64,000 nt of DNA from Schizochytrium sp. TIO01 (taxonomy: Eukaryota; Protista; Bigyra: Labyrinthulomycetes): positions 6,232,483 through 6,296,482 of the forward strand of contig SMSO01000032.1 in the NCBI GenBank assembly GCA_004764695.1, read 5' to 3'. The notes under the pieces are model-generated. The model was not told the origin of the DNA and ran no database searches. It saw only the letters and a list, made by a program, of their open reading frames with translations. Positions 39,019-43,619 of this stretch are shown piece by piece. Position 1 is the first letter of the stretch. Every line of letters starts with the position of its first letter. Made by a program: the position numbers and the translations under genes.

Positions 39019-40892
39019 GCAGCATTTTGTTGTCTACGCCCCGTTTTTTTAAAATTATACTCCCCCATCCTTCTATATACCCACACAATACCATATGTCA
39101 AGACAAAAGGATTGTAAACTTCCTTGCGGCTTGGATTTCGTGCGCGTTCCTACTGCTCCTAGAAACGGTAGTTCGACACGCCCCGTTATTGTACTGCTGC
39201 TAGCTCCTCGGATGAGCGTGCTGCTGGTCACTCGGTCGTGAAACTTCTCTTTCTTTTTTCTCTTTTTTTTTTTTTTTTTTTAAACCATCCTCACACCTTA
39301 GACACCATCTATTGCCCCTTCCCTACCATTCACCAACCCGCTTGACATTGTCATGAACACTGTGCAGTCAAGTTAAGCCTCTGCTTTGGCTTGGATATTC
39401 AACATAATTTACACAATGCCTCTGTCGTCAACCATAATATTGCGTTTTGCATTTCTTTTCATTTTACCTCTATCTACTATTACTTTTACATTTTTTCGTG
39501 GTATTCATTTCTTCTGTAATTACCTTTTCTGATCTTTACACACCTACTTGCCCTTCACACAAGTGCATCGTTGCAAGTCTAATTCTTGTGTTGCGTGTTG
39601 ATCACACATCTGAAACACTGCATGTTAGCATTTGCCCCTACTTCTCGTTATCCATTTTCTTATTCAGGAGCAAGAGCAAGACAAGAGACACTGTTTTCCT
39701 TGTCCTCGAATCATTAATTCTCGTATTCACATTCGAACCAGCCGGTATGGAAACAGCCTACGCTTCCGTGTAAGCCCACCCACCTCTGGCAATCATCAAC
39801 CATAGGCTCCCTCACAGCTGGATCGAACAACACGCTCCTCATGCTTACAATCCACGACCAACCAACAACTGCACTAACCAAGCAGAGGCCGCCGACGTTC
39901 TTTCGTCTTGATCCACGGCCCTCGCGCATGAGCCGTCCACCATCGTAAACAAAACCTACATTTACTCCGCGCTCCTCCTTATAGGTACCTAATGATGACG
40001 CAAAACAATAACAACAACGTAGTCACTTAATTGATCCATATATCTATCTTTCTTTAGCTAATGCAATAGATACTAAGAAAAGATACAAGCAAGCGTCCCA
40101 CAGGATCTACCCAACTTCCGTGGTGCCCCCCTCTGCATCCAAAGAGCCTCTCTCTTCCCCGGCCTTTCTGCCCATAGGGGGGTCTTCCTACGAGTGTGGA
40201 TGTCCCTGCTTCCCGCCCTAATGAGGCCCAGGATCTTTCTCAATATTTCAAAGACGGCGCGAAGCACTACACATCCACGAGACATAGATCACTCCTGCTC
40301 TTCTTCTGCCTTCGGGCCTCGCTCTCGCAGCCGCGGCCGCCGACCCGCGAGCTGGCGGGCCTCGAGGGGGGCGGCGGCCAGGCCCGGAGCCTCAGAGCGC
40401 GGGGCGGCGGCCGCGGAGCTGAAGAATCGACGATGGTTTGTTTCAAAGCTCAAGTTCAACTTCGAGATGGTCGATGTTCTTTTCCTCTGTTCTTGTTGGT
40501 CAGATTAGGAGAACACCCTATTACTACAATCACGCACTTTCACTAGCATCACCCTGGCGTTGATATCGTGGAGGTGGCAGGGTGAAAGAATGTGCTACGT
40601 TCTTCAGTAATGGCGATTATGGGACATGAAAATGATAATTTGAAATCGCTCATTACACTACATTAGAGTAGCAGGTAGTAGGTAGTAGGTAGAAAGATAG
40701 AACAGAGTTTGGAACAGAGAATTGGCGTAGGCCACGCTTAGAGTAAACGGTAGGGGTCGCGAAGGAAGGATACGACGGAAGGGATTTGAAAGTGATTTGA
40801 ATCAGAGCCTCGAGTGAAGAAAAGCTTCGGCAAACACGAAACTATATCTATCGCGAAGGGATTCGTTCGAGTGGACCTGCAAGCCTGGCAAG

Positions 40893-42383
40893 ATGAGCCT
40901 TCTCTCCAAAGCGAGCCTCGAGGATGTCGAGCTTGAGGGCAAGCGCGTGCTCATGCGCGTGGACTTCAACGTCCCGTTTGACAAGGCGACTGGCGAGATT
41001 AGCAACGACCAGCGCATCGTCGCCGCCCTGCCGAGCATCAAGTACGCTCTGGACAAGGGTGCCAAGTCCGTCGTGCTCATGTCTCACCTCGGACGCCCTG
41101 ACGGAAGCCCCAACCCGAAGTACTCCCTCAAGCCTGTCGCATCTCGTCTCGAGAAGCTTCTCGAGCGCCCCGTGAAATTCCTTGAGGACTGCGTGGGACC
41201 CGAGGTCGAGCAGGCCTGTGCCGACCCTGAAGCTGGCTCCGTGATCCTTCTTGAGAACTTGAGATTCCACATCGAGGAGGAGGGCAAGGGCAAGGATGCC
41301 GAGGGCAACAAGGTGAAAGCCGATGCCGCCAAGGTCGAGGAGTTCCGCAGCTCACTCACCAAGCTTGGAGACATCTACGTCAACGACGCCTTTGGAACTG
41401 CTCACAGAGCTCACTCATCCATGGTTGGCGTTCAGTTGGAGCCGCGTGTCGGAGGATTCCTTGTCAAGAAGGAACTCGACTACTTTGGAGCTGCTCTTCA
41501 GAACCCGGCACGCCCGTTTGTGAGCATTCTTGGTGGCGCCAAGGTTGAGGATAAGCTTCAGCTCATCATGAACATGCTCGATATTGTCAATGTCATGGTC
41601 ATTGGAGGAGGCATGGCCTTCACCTTCAAGAAGGTCGCCGGTATGGAGATTGGAAGCAGTCTCTTTGACGAGCCTGGATCACAGCTTGTGCCCAAGATCC
41701 TTGAGAAGGCTAAGGAAAAGGGCGTCGAAATCTATCTCCCCAACGACTTCATTGCTGCTTCCAAGTTTGACAAGGATGCCGAGTTCAAGGTCGTCACTGA
41801 AGAGGAGGGCGTCCCTGAGGGATGGCTGGGCCTCGACATTGGCCCTGATTCATCCAAGCGCTTCGCCGAGGTCATCGCCAAGGCCAAGCTCATCGTCTGG
41901 AACGGACCCATGGGTGTCTTTGAGTTCCCCAACTTTGCCAAGGGAACCAAGGCCGTCATGGATGCCGTTGTTGACGTCACCAAGGCTGGCGCTACCACCA
42001 TCATTGGTGGTGGCGACACCGCCACCTGCTGCACCAAGGAGTACTTTGATACTGAGGACAAGGTCTCCCACGTCTCTACTGGTGGTGGCGCCTCTCTTGC
42101 TCTCCTCGAGGGCCAGGAGCTCCCGGGTGTCGCTGCTCTCAGCGAGAAAAAGGTACGAAACAACAACTCTGCAACCCCATCTTCGAAAAGCACCAAGGCT
42201 ACTGCCTCTGCTACTGCTGAAAAGTCTCCCACCAGCAGCGGCAGTGGCAGCAGCAGCAGCAACACCAATGATAAAAAGCAGTCTGGCATTATGCGTCACC
42301 TTGAGGAATACCCCTTGGCTGTCGCTGGAGCTGTTGCTTTGGGTCTTTTGCTTGTAACTACCGCTCTCAAGCGCAAAAACTGA
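40893..42383 (+). CDS. PGK: Phosphoglycerate kinase, long (unspliced) form with Ser-rich linker and C-terminal TM tail anchor
   Basis: Motifs [52 protein letters not shown] and STGGGASL. The canonical enzyme ends at ~aa 420 (LSEKK); the ORF continues 76 aa to ...[24 protein letters not shown]. Confidence 0.95.
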
Positions 42384-42516
42384 CGACTTTTTTTCTTCAT
42401 TTCTTTTCCCTAAAAACCTGGGGTGTACCTATACTCTCTTACTACGCTTTTTTCTCTTTTTTCCTTTGTACGCTTCTTCATCAACAAACACAAATTCACT
42501 ACATTCATTCACACAG
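42153..42516 (+). other. Putative alternatively retained GT-AG intron of PGK; spliced CDS join(40893..42152,42517..42525) = 422 aa ending SEKKAE*
   Basis: AAG|GTACGA donor sits exactly at the end of the PGK homology. A pyrimidine-rich tract precedes the CACACAG| acceptor, which is followed in phase 0 by GCT GAG TAA. Confidence 0.6.
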
Positions 42517-43619
42517 GCTGAGTAAATTGACAACGCAATCACATCATAACACATCATCTCGCTCTGGCCCATGCTAGTATTGCCTGAAATTCGGTCTTCT
42601 AGTTCACTGGGTCGCCACTATTCCTTTAAAAGACAGCAATGGGTGCGAAAGGGCTCTAGTCACATGGCGATGATAAAGTGACAACAACTTACGCCCCAAT
42701 TGCAATTGTTTATCAGACGACCTTTTGGCATAATCTTGAGGGTTTCTTTTCTTAGGGATGCGTAGAGGTAACGATTTATTTGGTATTTTTCATTTGTGAA
42801 TTTGGACTTGTAGCTTTTTTTTCTTCTTTTTTCTTAACTCCTTTCCTGATAATAAAAATTATCAAGTTAGAACTAAGTTAGACCGCTTGAGGCTTGCAAC
42901 TATCAACTTGTCTGCTCACTTCTATATCATCTAATTTCCTTACCCAACGGAAGTCGTCATGCTAACTCTGCTTTTCAATTGTATCATAACCTAATTTTAT
43001 GGACGTGACCAAAAGTTCACAACAGCTTGCACCGTGGTGAAATCTATTCGCAATTTGTTTCATCAATGACGGCCAAATTTATTCTTTACCACTTGTCGCA
43101 CGAATGCATTTGCATGATTTATGGCTCTTTCTGCTATTTTCTTTCAGATTATATTAAATTTTCAATAGCGACACGAAATCAGCTTGATCTTGACACTAAA
43201 CTTTATGTGTTGCTTATCGATGAAGGTAGAAGTCTAGAATTATTGCATGACGCTACCATTTAGAGTTTTATATCATAAATTTATTGTTCTCATAAGTACA
43301 GTAGTTTCATTATCTTCCAAAAGCATATAATGCTATTATAAACTCTCTTCAAAAGTAGAGTACCTATGAGTTATACTTTTGTCATATCTATCATGACTAG
43401 GATTATTTAGAAGTAGTGAACACAGGAACTTATGATAGTAAACCATATAAGTCAATTGAAAAAAAAAAAATGAAAAAAAAAAAGCATTGAAGATTATAAA
43501 TGCTTTCAAGGAATCTGCATTCTAAAGCCTCGTGTTGGATTTCGTCTTATATTTGCTTTCACTGCTTTCACTTTTGCTTAAGCTTGCCTTTTTTTATATG
43601 CCAGAGCTAGGCCACCCTG

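Follow-up and report, generated by a model that had tools for sequence, protein, structure and literature searches.

Introduction

Redirection of a glycolytic enzyme by alternative splicing at its C-terminus is a known kind of arrangement. Phosphoglycerate kinase (PGK) of Aspergillus nidulans and GAPDH of Ustilago acquire a type 1 peroxisomal targeting signal (PTS1) by differential splicing, and PGK of Ustilago acquires one by stop-codon read-through (Freitag et al. 2012, as reviewed in PMC3798809). The present analysis concerns a PGK gene in 64,000 nucleotides of Schizochytrium sp. TIO01 (NCBI GenBank assembly GCA_004764695.1, contig SMSO01000032.1, positions 6,232,483 to 6,296,482 of the forward strand). 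This whole stretch is referred to as the window, and positions are counted from its first base. The terminal intron of the gene (42153-42516, forward strand) is either removed, giving an mRNA for an ordinary soluble PGK, or kept, giving an mRNA for a PGK with a predicted transmembrane tail.

An earlier note on this DNA, made from the sequence alone, had proposed this switch and had offered peroxisomal PGK isoforms of fungi, made by splicing or read-through, as its precedent. In the fungi, as here, a single gene yields both a cytosolic enzyme and one whose C-terminal extension directs it to an organelle, and in A. nidulans the choice is likewise made by splicing at the 3' end. The fungal extension, however, ends in a PTS1 tripeptide and leads to import into the lumen of the peroxisome, whereas that of the window PGK is a predicted helix with a basic end, would leave the enzyme on the cytosolic face, and occurs in a stramenopile.

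Stramenopiles possess a mitochondrial-matrix PGK with an N-terminal presequence, and the second half of glycolysis takes place in their mitochondria (PMC6198282, PMC5715807). The organism group and the enzyme are the same as here, and the genome that contains the window also has such a gene (L002, described below). The matrix PGK is a separate gene product with a cleavable N-terminal import signal, whereas the window PGK would gain a C-terminal tail by intron retention. These two papers make no mention of a transmembrane or C-terminal PGK anchor. In kinetoplastids, the glycosomal enzymes PGKC and PGKA are accompanied by PGK-like proteins with transmembrane domains. According to the review PMC7729029, the latter also contain cyclic-nucleotide-binding domains and lack key catalytic residues through loss. 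These PGKs resemble the window PGK in that C-terminal extensions or membrane helices alter their location. They differ in being separate genes; the window PGK has splice forms, a full-length, high-scoring PGK domain and one terminal helix.

Outside glycolysis, cytochrome b5 occurs as a soluble and a tail-anchored isoform made by alternative splicing. There too the C-terminal membrane helix is gained or lost through the choice between 3' ends, in a different protein family. No record of a soluble and tail-anchored splice pair was found for a glycolytic kinase. No published description of a tail-anchored PGK was found in full-text literature searches, whose coverage was incomplete, so that this is absence of evidence only. 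The earlier note had known of no description of its proposed mechanism in this lineage. A conserved lineage of tail-anchored PGKs appears to be undescribed.

Results

The reading frame and its two ends

The gene was found as an intron-free PGK reading frame at 40893-42383 on the forward strand, encoding 496 residues when translated unspliced. Residues 9-408 matched Pfam PF00162 over profile positions 1-379 of 379 (E 9e-151; score 502.6 bits, curated cut-off 27). Identity to eukaryotic PGKs was 61-78%, the upper figure being that for the PGK of Hondaea fermentalgiana. Residues 1-420, encoded by exon 1 (40893-42152), comprise a complete PGK enzyme and are common to both isoforms. The PGK domain begins at the start of the protein, with no N-terminal signal peptide. 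No in-frame ATG was present upstream of 40893, and the window PGK therefore has no N-terminal targeting extension.

PGK homology stops at the intron, which begins at 42153 with the donor AAG/GTACGA (the solidus marks the splice site). After 364 nt the intron closes at 42516 with the acceptor CACACAG/, and exon 2 opens with GCT GAG TAA (42517-42525). Removal of the intron thus adds Ala-Glu-stop and gives a product of 422 residues. Unspliced, the frame continues for a further 76 codons (residues 421-496). These encode a linker rich in Ser, Thr and Ala and predicted to be disordered (residues 421-472, 42153-42308), a hydrophobic segment (residues 473-492, 42309-42368) and the basic end KRKN with its TGA stop codon (42369-42383, the stop at 42381-42383). 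The rest of the intron (42384-42516) is non-coding and contains a pyrimidine-rich tract and the acceptor. The earlier note had placed donor, acceptor and tail in just this way; both splice sites were confirmed, and all its coordinates for the tail were correct.

The hydrophobic segment had a mean Kyte-Doolittle (KD) value of 1.96, and no other 19-mer in the protein was as hydrophobic as the one found there; the highest value for residues 1-420 was 1.65, in a stretch inside the PGK fold. Four residues, KRKN (net +3), separate the segment from the C-terminus. With a single C-terminal hydrophobic segment, no signal peptide and no other transmembrane segment, the layout is that predicted of a tail-anchored protein, as had been proposed. 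Neither isoform has a PTS1 tripeptide (SKL-like), their ends being ...KRKN and ...KAE. A PTS1 and a glycosylphosphatidylinositol (GPI) signal were both rejected from the sequence, the former on these ends and the latter on the absence of the N-terminal signal peptide that it would need.

An AlphaFold2 model was made from a 12-sequence alignment of tailed PGKs. It had a mean predicted local distance difference test score (pLDDT) of 75 and a predicted template modelling score (pTM) of 0.72. The model was confident over the predicted PGK fold, with strands and helices alternating over residues 1-415. Residues 419-466 were without secondary structure (pLDDT 24-31), and a terminal helix, delimited as 467-495 or 474-495, was modelled with low confidence (pLDDT 44-60).

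Both mRNA forms in the same samples

The RNA data comprised assembled contigs of four runs (X1, X2, X4 and X11) from four studies, placed on positions 40600-43100. A 57-nt contig present in all four runs joins 42150 to 42515, skipping 364 bases with GT and AG at their ends. The joint can slide by 2 bases, and the intron accordingly occupies 42153-42516. A 421-nt contig that is colinear with the genome over 42124-42544, and so keeps the intron, was present in the same four runs. K-mer depths for the spliced and retained forms were 2122/1134, 500/493, 1265/764 and 205/77 in the individual runs. Contig depths are crude, and all that these support is that neither form is rare.

Two protein records match the two mRNAs. 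The 496-aa and 422-aa forms share one 90% cluster; the shorter record (P0002) is identical to the longer up to ...SEKK and then ends in AE, the end predicted for the spliced product. Both are filed under a genome source and a transcriptome source (MMETSP), and the exact window protein is recorded also in genome-portal, run-assembly and marine transcriptome sources. The terminal intron is therefore real, its junction is known to the base, and the two mRNA forms co-occur in the same samples, as the earlier note had predicted.

The X11 contigs span 40841 to 42772 with zero depth in both flanks, and those of X1 likewise stop at 42773 with no depth beyond. These limits place the 5' untranslated leader at 40841-40892, its start being approximate, and the 3' untranslated region of both mRNA forms at 42526-42772. 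Given the zero flank depth and the contig limits, the molecules that carry the intron in X11 are transcripts rather than residual DNA. Contaminating DNA as the origin of the intron-bearing contig was accordingly rejected for X11 and largely for X1. Nor does the joined form stem from a processed retrocopy: in a search of the 64-Mb assembly (37 contigs), the end of exon 1 was single-copy, and so were the intron and exon 2, leaving no copy of the gene that lacks the intron.

Some contigs of X1, X2 and X4 reach well past the transcript ends seen in X11 (over 40600-40840 and 42784-43100), and one contig of 4288 nt extends 3.3 kb upstream. This compact region may contain adjoining or overlapping transcripts of neighbouring genes, or these three runs may include some DNA.

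Conservation of the tail

The distribution of the tail was taken from the best 120 full-length protein hits. Among these, a tail of the same design was present in 11 distinct clusters beyond that of the window, making 12 tailed PGKs in all. Nine of the clusters group with the window gene in the tree described below, including those of H. fermentalgiana and Mucochytrium quahogii, and two are from Saprolegniales (Aphanomyces stellatus, Saprolegnia diclina and S. parasitica). Several of the tailed clusters come from transcriptome, run-assembly or metagenome sources. All have in common a stretch of 15-20 uncharged residues with a mean KD of 1.9-2.5, lying 2-7 residues from the C-terminus and followed by a net charge of +1 to +3, the basic end being present in 12/12. 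Conservation of the tail had been named by the earlier note as the deciding test, and helix and basic end were indeed found in Hondaea, Mucochytrium, seven further clusters and Saprolegniales.

The Hondaea PGK is the closest named homologue (478 aa, 78% identity) and aligns over the full query. It ends ...SEKKVRETP...FLATLEANPVATAGVVALGLALVTLALTRNN. Val-Arg follows directly after SEKK, as in the window, where the same codons form the donor GTACGA; this shared position is suggestive only. Outside the oomycetes, the tails have an N/Y-P turn before the helix, usually within LE[EA]NP. In the alignment of the 12 tailed PGKs, Pro474 was invariant and Ala478 and Ala482 nearly so. The linker is not conserved; its length is 15-56 residues across the relatives and its sequence drifts.

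No anchor was found in 102 other retrieved PGKs, in which the tail past the terminal motif was shorter than 15 residues. Where a C-terminus was longer, the protein was a tandem or fused PGK, a fragment or an unparsed model, and none of these ended in a helix. A metagenome scan with the whole protein gave 80 PGK loci, none of them from a close relative; all 80 were without such a tail and ended a few residues past the LPGVxxLS motif. Searches with the tail alone gave nothing beyond itself or a low-complexity match, whether by word-indexed search (residues 418-496), with the 76-aa tail as a phmmer query to 1.84 billion representative sequences, or with the tail of P0021. Given how short the tail is and how rapidly it drifts, these blanks are not informative on its distribution.

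In a maximum-likelihood tree of the PGK domains, from which the tails had been removed, tailed PGKs fell in three places: a pair formed by the window and Hondaea, a seven-member group including Mucochytrium, and the Saprolegniales, where tailed and short models were interleaved. Peronosporalean and pythialean PGKs in the same tree were short only. The clusters of the non-oomycete relatives contained tailed forms only, and the anchor therefore looks ancestral. This adjusts the picture given by the earlier note: with the anchored form as the sole form in these clusters, the tail looks older than the intron that removes it, and that intron may be specific to one lineage, the Aurantiochytrium/Hondaea branch. 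A transcript-derived record in the cluster of one tailed PGK (P0124, 359 aa, with P0011) jumps from ...FSGGTK to VSFLE, which resembles the start of a tail; faulty assembly or extensive internal splicing could account for the jump.

The tail was also considered as a possible chance open frame. In mononucleotide shuffles of the intron, the frame stayed open for at least 76 codons in 2.9%. The open frame by itself is weak evidence, and the case is carried by conservation and the RNA data. G+C at third codon positions (GC3) was 0.71 in the PGK part versus 0.51 in the tail, in line with the weaker codon bias past the donor that had been remarked on before. G+C falls from 0.51 in the tail to 0.35 exactly past the tail stop codon. 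One strain variant lies within the helix (42315 T>C) and is synonymous, for Leu; one allele (P0003) carries a Thr>Ala change in the linker. On these sequence comparisons, the tail is not a chance reading frame.

Saprolegnian PGKs

In the public annotation of S. diclina, PGK1 (452 aa) is tailed and "PGK1, variant" (413 aa) is not; the two lie on the same contig, and their accession numbers are consecutive. The short models from Saprolegniales stop at TDA or TDV, the residues that stand just before the tail in the long models. It is inferred from these models that in S. diclina, too, one gene gives anchored and soluble products. The polarity in Saprolegnia may be opposite to that in the window, with the stop codon lying inside the unspliced donor. 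The NP motif is absent from saprolegnian tails, in which a Trp-Ser is conserved in its stead, so that the saprolegnian tail may represent an independent gain.

Proposed mechanism and target membrane

The reading preferred here is that one gene is switched at its terminal intron, the spliced form giving a soluble PGK of 422 residues and the retained form a tail-anchored PGK of 496 residues; a probability of about 0.75 was assigned to it. Removal of 42153-42516 would append Ala-Glu-stop and yield an ordinary soluble enzyme. When the intron is kept, translation would continue through a flexible linker of about 52 residues into the 20-residue hydrophobic helix and KRKN. The anchored form would then be inserted post-translationally into an organelle membrane, with its catalytic domain on the cytosolic face. 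The anchor itself would be old and selected, as its presence in Hondaea, Mucochytrium, the seven further grouping clusters and the saprolegnian oomycete PGKs suggests. The intron would split the output of a single gene between free and tethered PGK, the splice ratio could be regulated, and local supply of ATP is one purpose that such an arrangement could serve.

In tail-anchored proteins, moderate hydrophobicity of the helix combined with a basic end generally points to the mitochondrial outer membrane or to peroxisomes rather than to the endoplasmic reticulum (ER). The mean KD of the helix was 1.96 in the window PGK, nearer to that of the Fis1-like protein (1.88) than to that of Sec61-beta (2.47) of the same genome, two comparators being too few to count as evidence. 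A tentative order of target membranes is the mitochondrial outer membrane, then the ER, then the peroxisome. PGK at the mitochondrial surface is an attractive idea, given that lower glycolysis in this organism may be mitochondrial (see below).

A broader proposal is more speculative, and on balance we doubt it. Membrane-tethered PGK of cytosolic type would be an old and unrecognised feature of heterotrophic stramenopiles, both labyrinthulomycete-type and saprolegnian. Docked on the mitochondrial outer membrane, it would pass 3-phosphoglycerate to lower glycolysis in the matrix and to the serine pathway. The terminal intron would set the amounts of tethered and free enzyme, and Saprolegnia would achieve the same by a different splice arrangement.

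PGK is a textbook soluble cytosolic marker, and an anchored form of cytosolic type, if true, adds a third location, the organelle surface. Removal of an anchor by splicing in one lineage would, if true, be a new way to set the location of an enzyme. The idea also opens a direct experimental route to the exchange of glycolytic flux and ATP between cytosol and organelles. Thraustochytrids are used industrially for docosahexaenoic acid (DHA) and lipids, and expression elements used in engineering them come from the PGK locus; any reuse of the PGK 3' region takes with it an alternative intron and a coding tail.

Alternative explanations

The RNA contigs and the evolutionary comparison support the reading of the earlier note, and at the levels of protein and localisation it is a prediction. 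Several points weigh against it. Both isoforms are known from RNA and sequence only. The splice ratio is rough, being drawn from the depths of assembled contigs at this one intron. The RNA status of the runs is a program's guess, and X2 was flagged as probably DNA. With the tail-only searches blank, the distribution of the tail rests on the best 120 full-length hits. Relatives were compared as proteins, and their transcriptome clusters contain the tailed form only, so that the switch may be confined to the window lineage and, by another route, to Saprolegnia. Finally, the window PGK has Tyr-Pro where its relatives have the conserved Asn-Pro.

Two simpler accounts would each dispense with one of the isoforms. 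In one, PGK is always anchored: the ancestral 496-aa product is the functional one, while splicing makes use of a chance GT..AG pair and yields an mRNA with no role of its own. In favour of this account, the tail is plainly what has been conserved, the assemblies of the related PGK clusters gave tailed forms only, and splicing adds just two arbitrary residues. We consider it unlikely nonetheless, as the k-mer depth of the spliced junction equalled or exceeded that of the retained form in 4/4 runs, far above expected noise, the spliced product is a canonical full-length PGK with the same end point as normal PGKs, and S. diclina has an annotated soluble variant. The opposite account, in which PGK is soluble only, would make the intron-bearing RNA untranslated pre-mRNA, unprocessed or poorly spliced, and the tail frame a relic of an ancestral anchor that has since become intronic. 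Protists commonly retain introns; the weaker codon bias of the tail (GC3 0.51 vs 0.71) and the nonsynonymous allele in the linker also fit a relic. Such a relic would not be expected to keep a 76-codon frame that few shuffles reproduce, nor a helix, proline and basic end matching those of long-diverged relatives while the linker drifted, and the sole strain variant in the helix is synonymous. The retained form was moreover assembled as a complete transcript. Junction-dependent mRNA decay is not expected where no exon junction lies downstream of the stop codon, which is the case for the tail stop. This account, too, was given little probability.

A further account accepts both isoforms and disputes the anchor, the hydrophobic C-terminus being instead an oligomerisation or degradation element or some other signal. 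The location of the tail is a prediction from sequence, its helix was modelled with low confidence, and its Ala/Gly-rich composition with small-xxx-small spacing is a feature of helix-helix packing as well. Tail-anchored proteins, however, are defined by just the layout seen here, an uncharged segment of 15-20 residues lying 2-7 residues from the C-terminus, with positive charge after it and a flexible linker before it. This layout recurs in 12/12 tailed PGKs despite sequence drift, and neither a PTS1 tripeptide nor the N-terminal signal peptide needed for GPI is present. A role other than anchoring was judged very improbable. The switch between soluble and anchored PGK is thus the preferred reading.

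Other PGK and glycolytic genes

The second full PGK of the assembly (L002:1393-2727, contig C24 about 2071094-2072428) encodes 444 residues, is 66% identical to the window PGK, and ends ...LSDK with no tail. It has an N-terminal extension of 30 residues, rich in Ser, Arg and Ala and resembling a mitochondrial presequence. With this presequence-type extension on L002, the window gene is the sole source of PGK without one.

No C-terminal hydrophobic tail was found in the open frames of GAPDH (4 loci), enolase, pyruvate kinase (3), iPGM or the dPGM-like gene, and a wider set of tethered glycolytic enzymes was rejected on this basis. The sole full-length enolase match (L088, C4:922070-922954, minus strand) has a presequence-like start, MFAPQVVSRRAM..., and so does the single iPGM (L095, C36:947547-948194, minus strand), which begins MLRGFSRKSTFAAAARL... 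These starts suggest that lower glycolysis may be largely mitochondrial in this organism, and they fit the mitochondrial lower glycolysis of stramenopiles described in PMC6198282 and PMC5715807. The enolase has a second Met 11 residues in, which could yield a cytosolic form.

Several unusual PGK architectures were also encountered. In the assembly, a short PGK-like stretch (L003, C31:3048287-3048514; profile positions 16-95, E 1.5e-8) lies in an open frame of 1775 codons and may be a PGK-N-like module inside a very large protein. Among the metagenome loci, one encodes a fusion of PGK and triosephosphate isomerase (L006), two encode PGK with a HIT-like domain and Gly/Lys-rich tails (L051, L054), and two encode PGKs with a Cys-rich CGCSCSH end (L027, L065). 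Tandem PGK-PGK proteins or fragments were retrieved from marine catalogues at 818-833 aa (P0004, P0005, P0007) and 544-567 aa (P0018, P0020, P0028). In the tandem proteins, the first PGK is followed by a short Ala/Gly linker (...SDKK..LAVGG..) and then by the second PGK domain.

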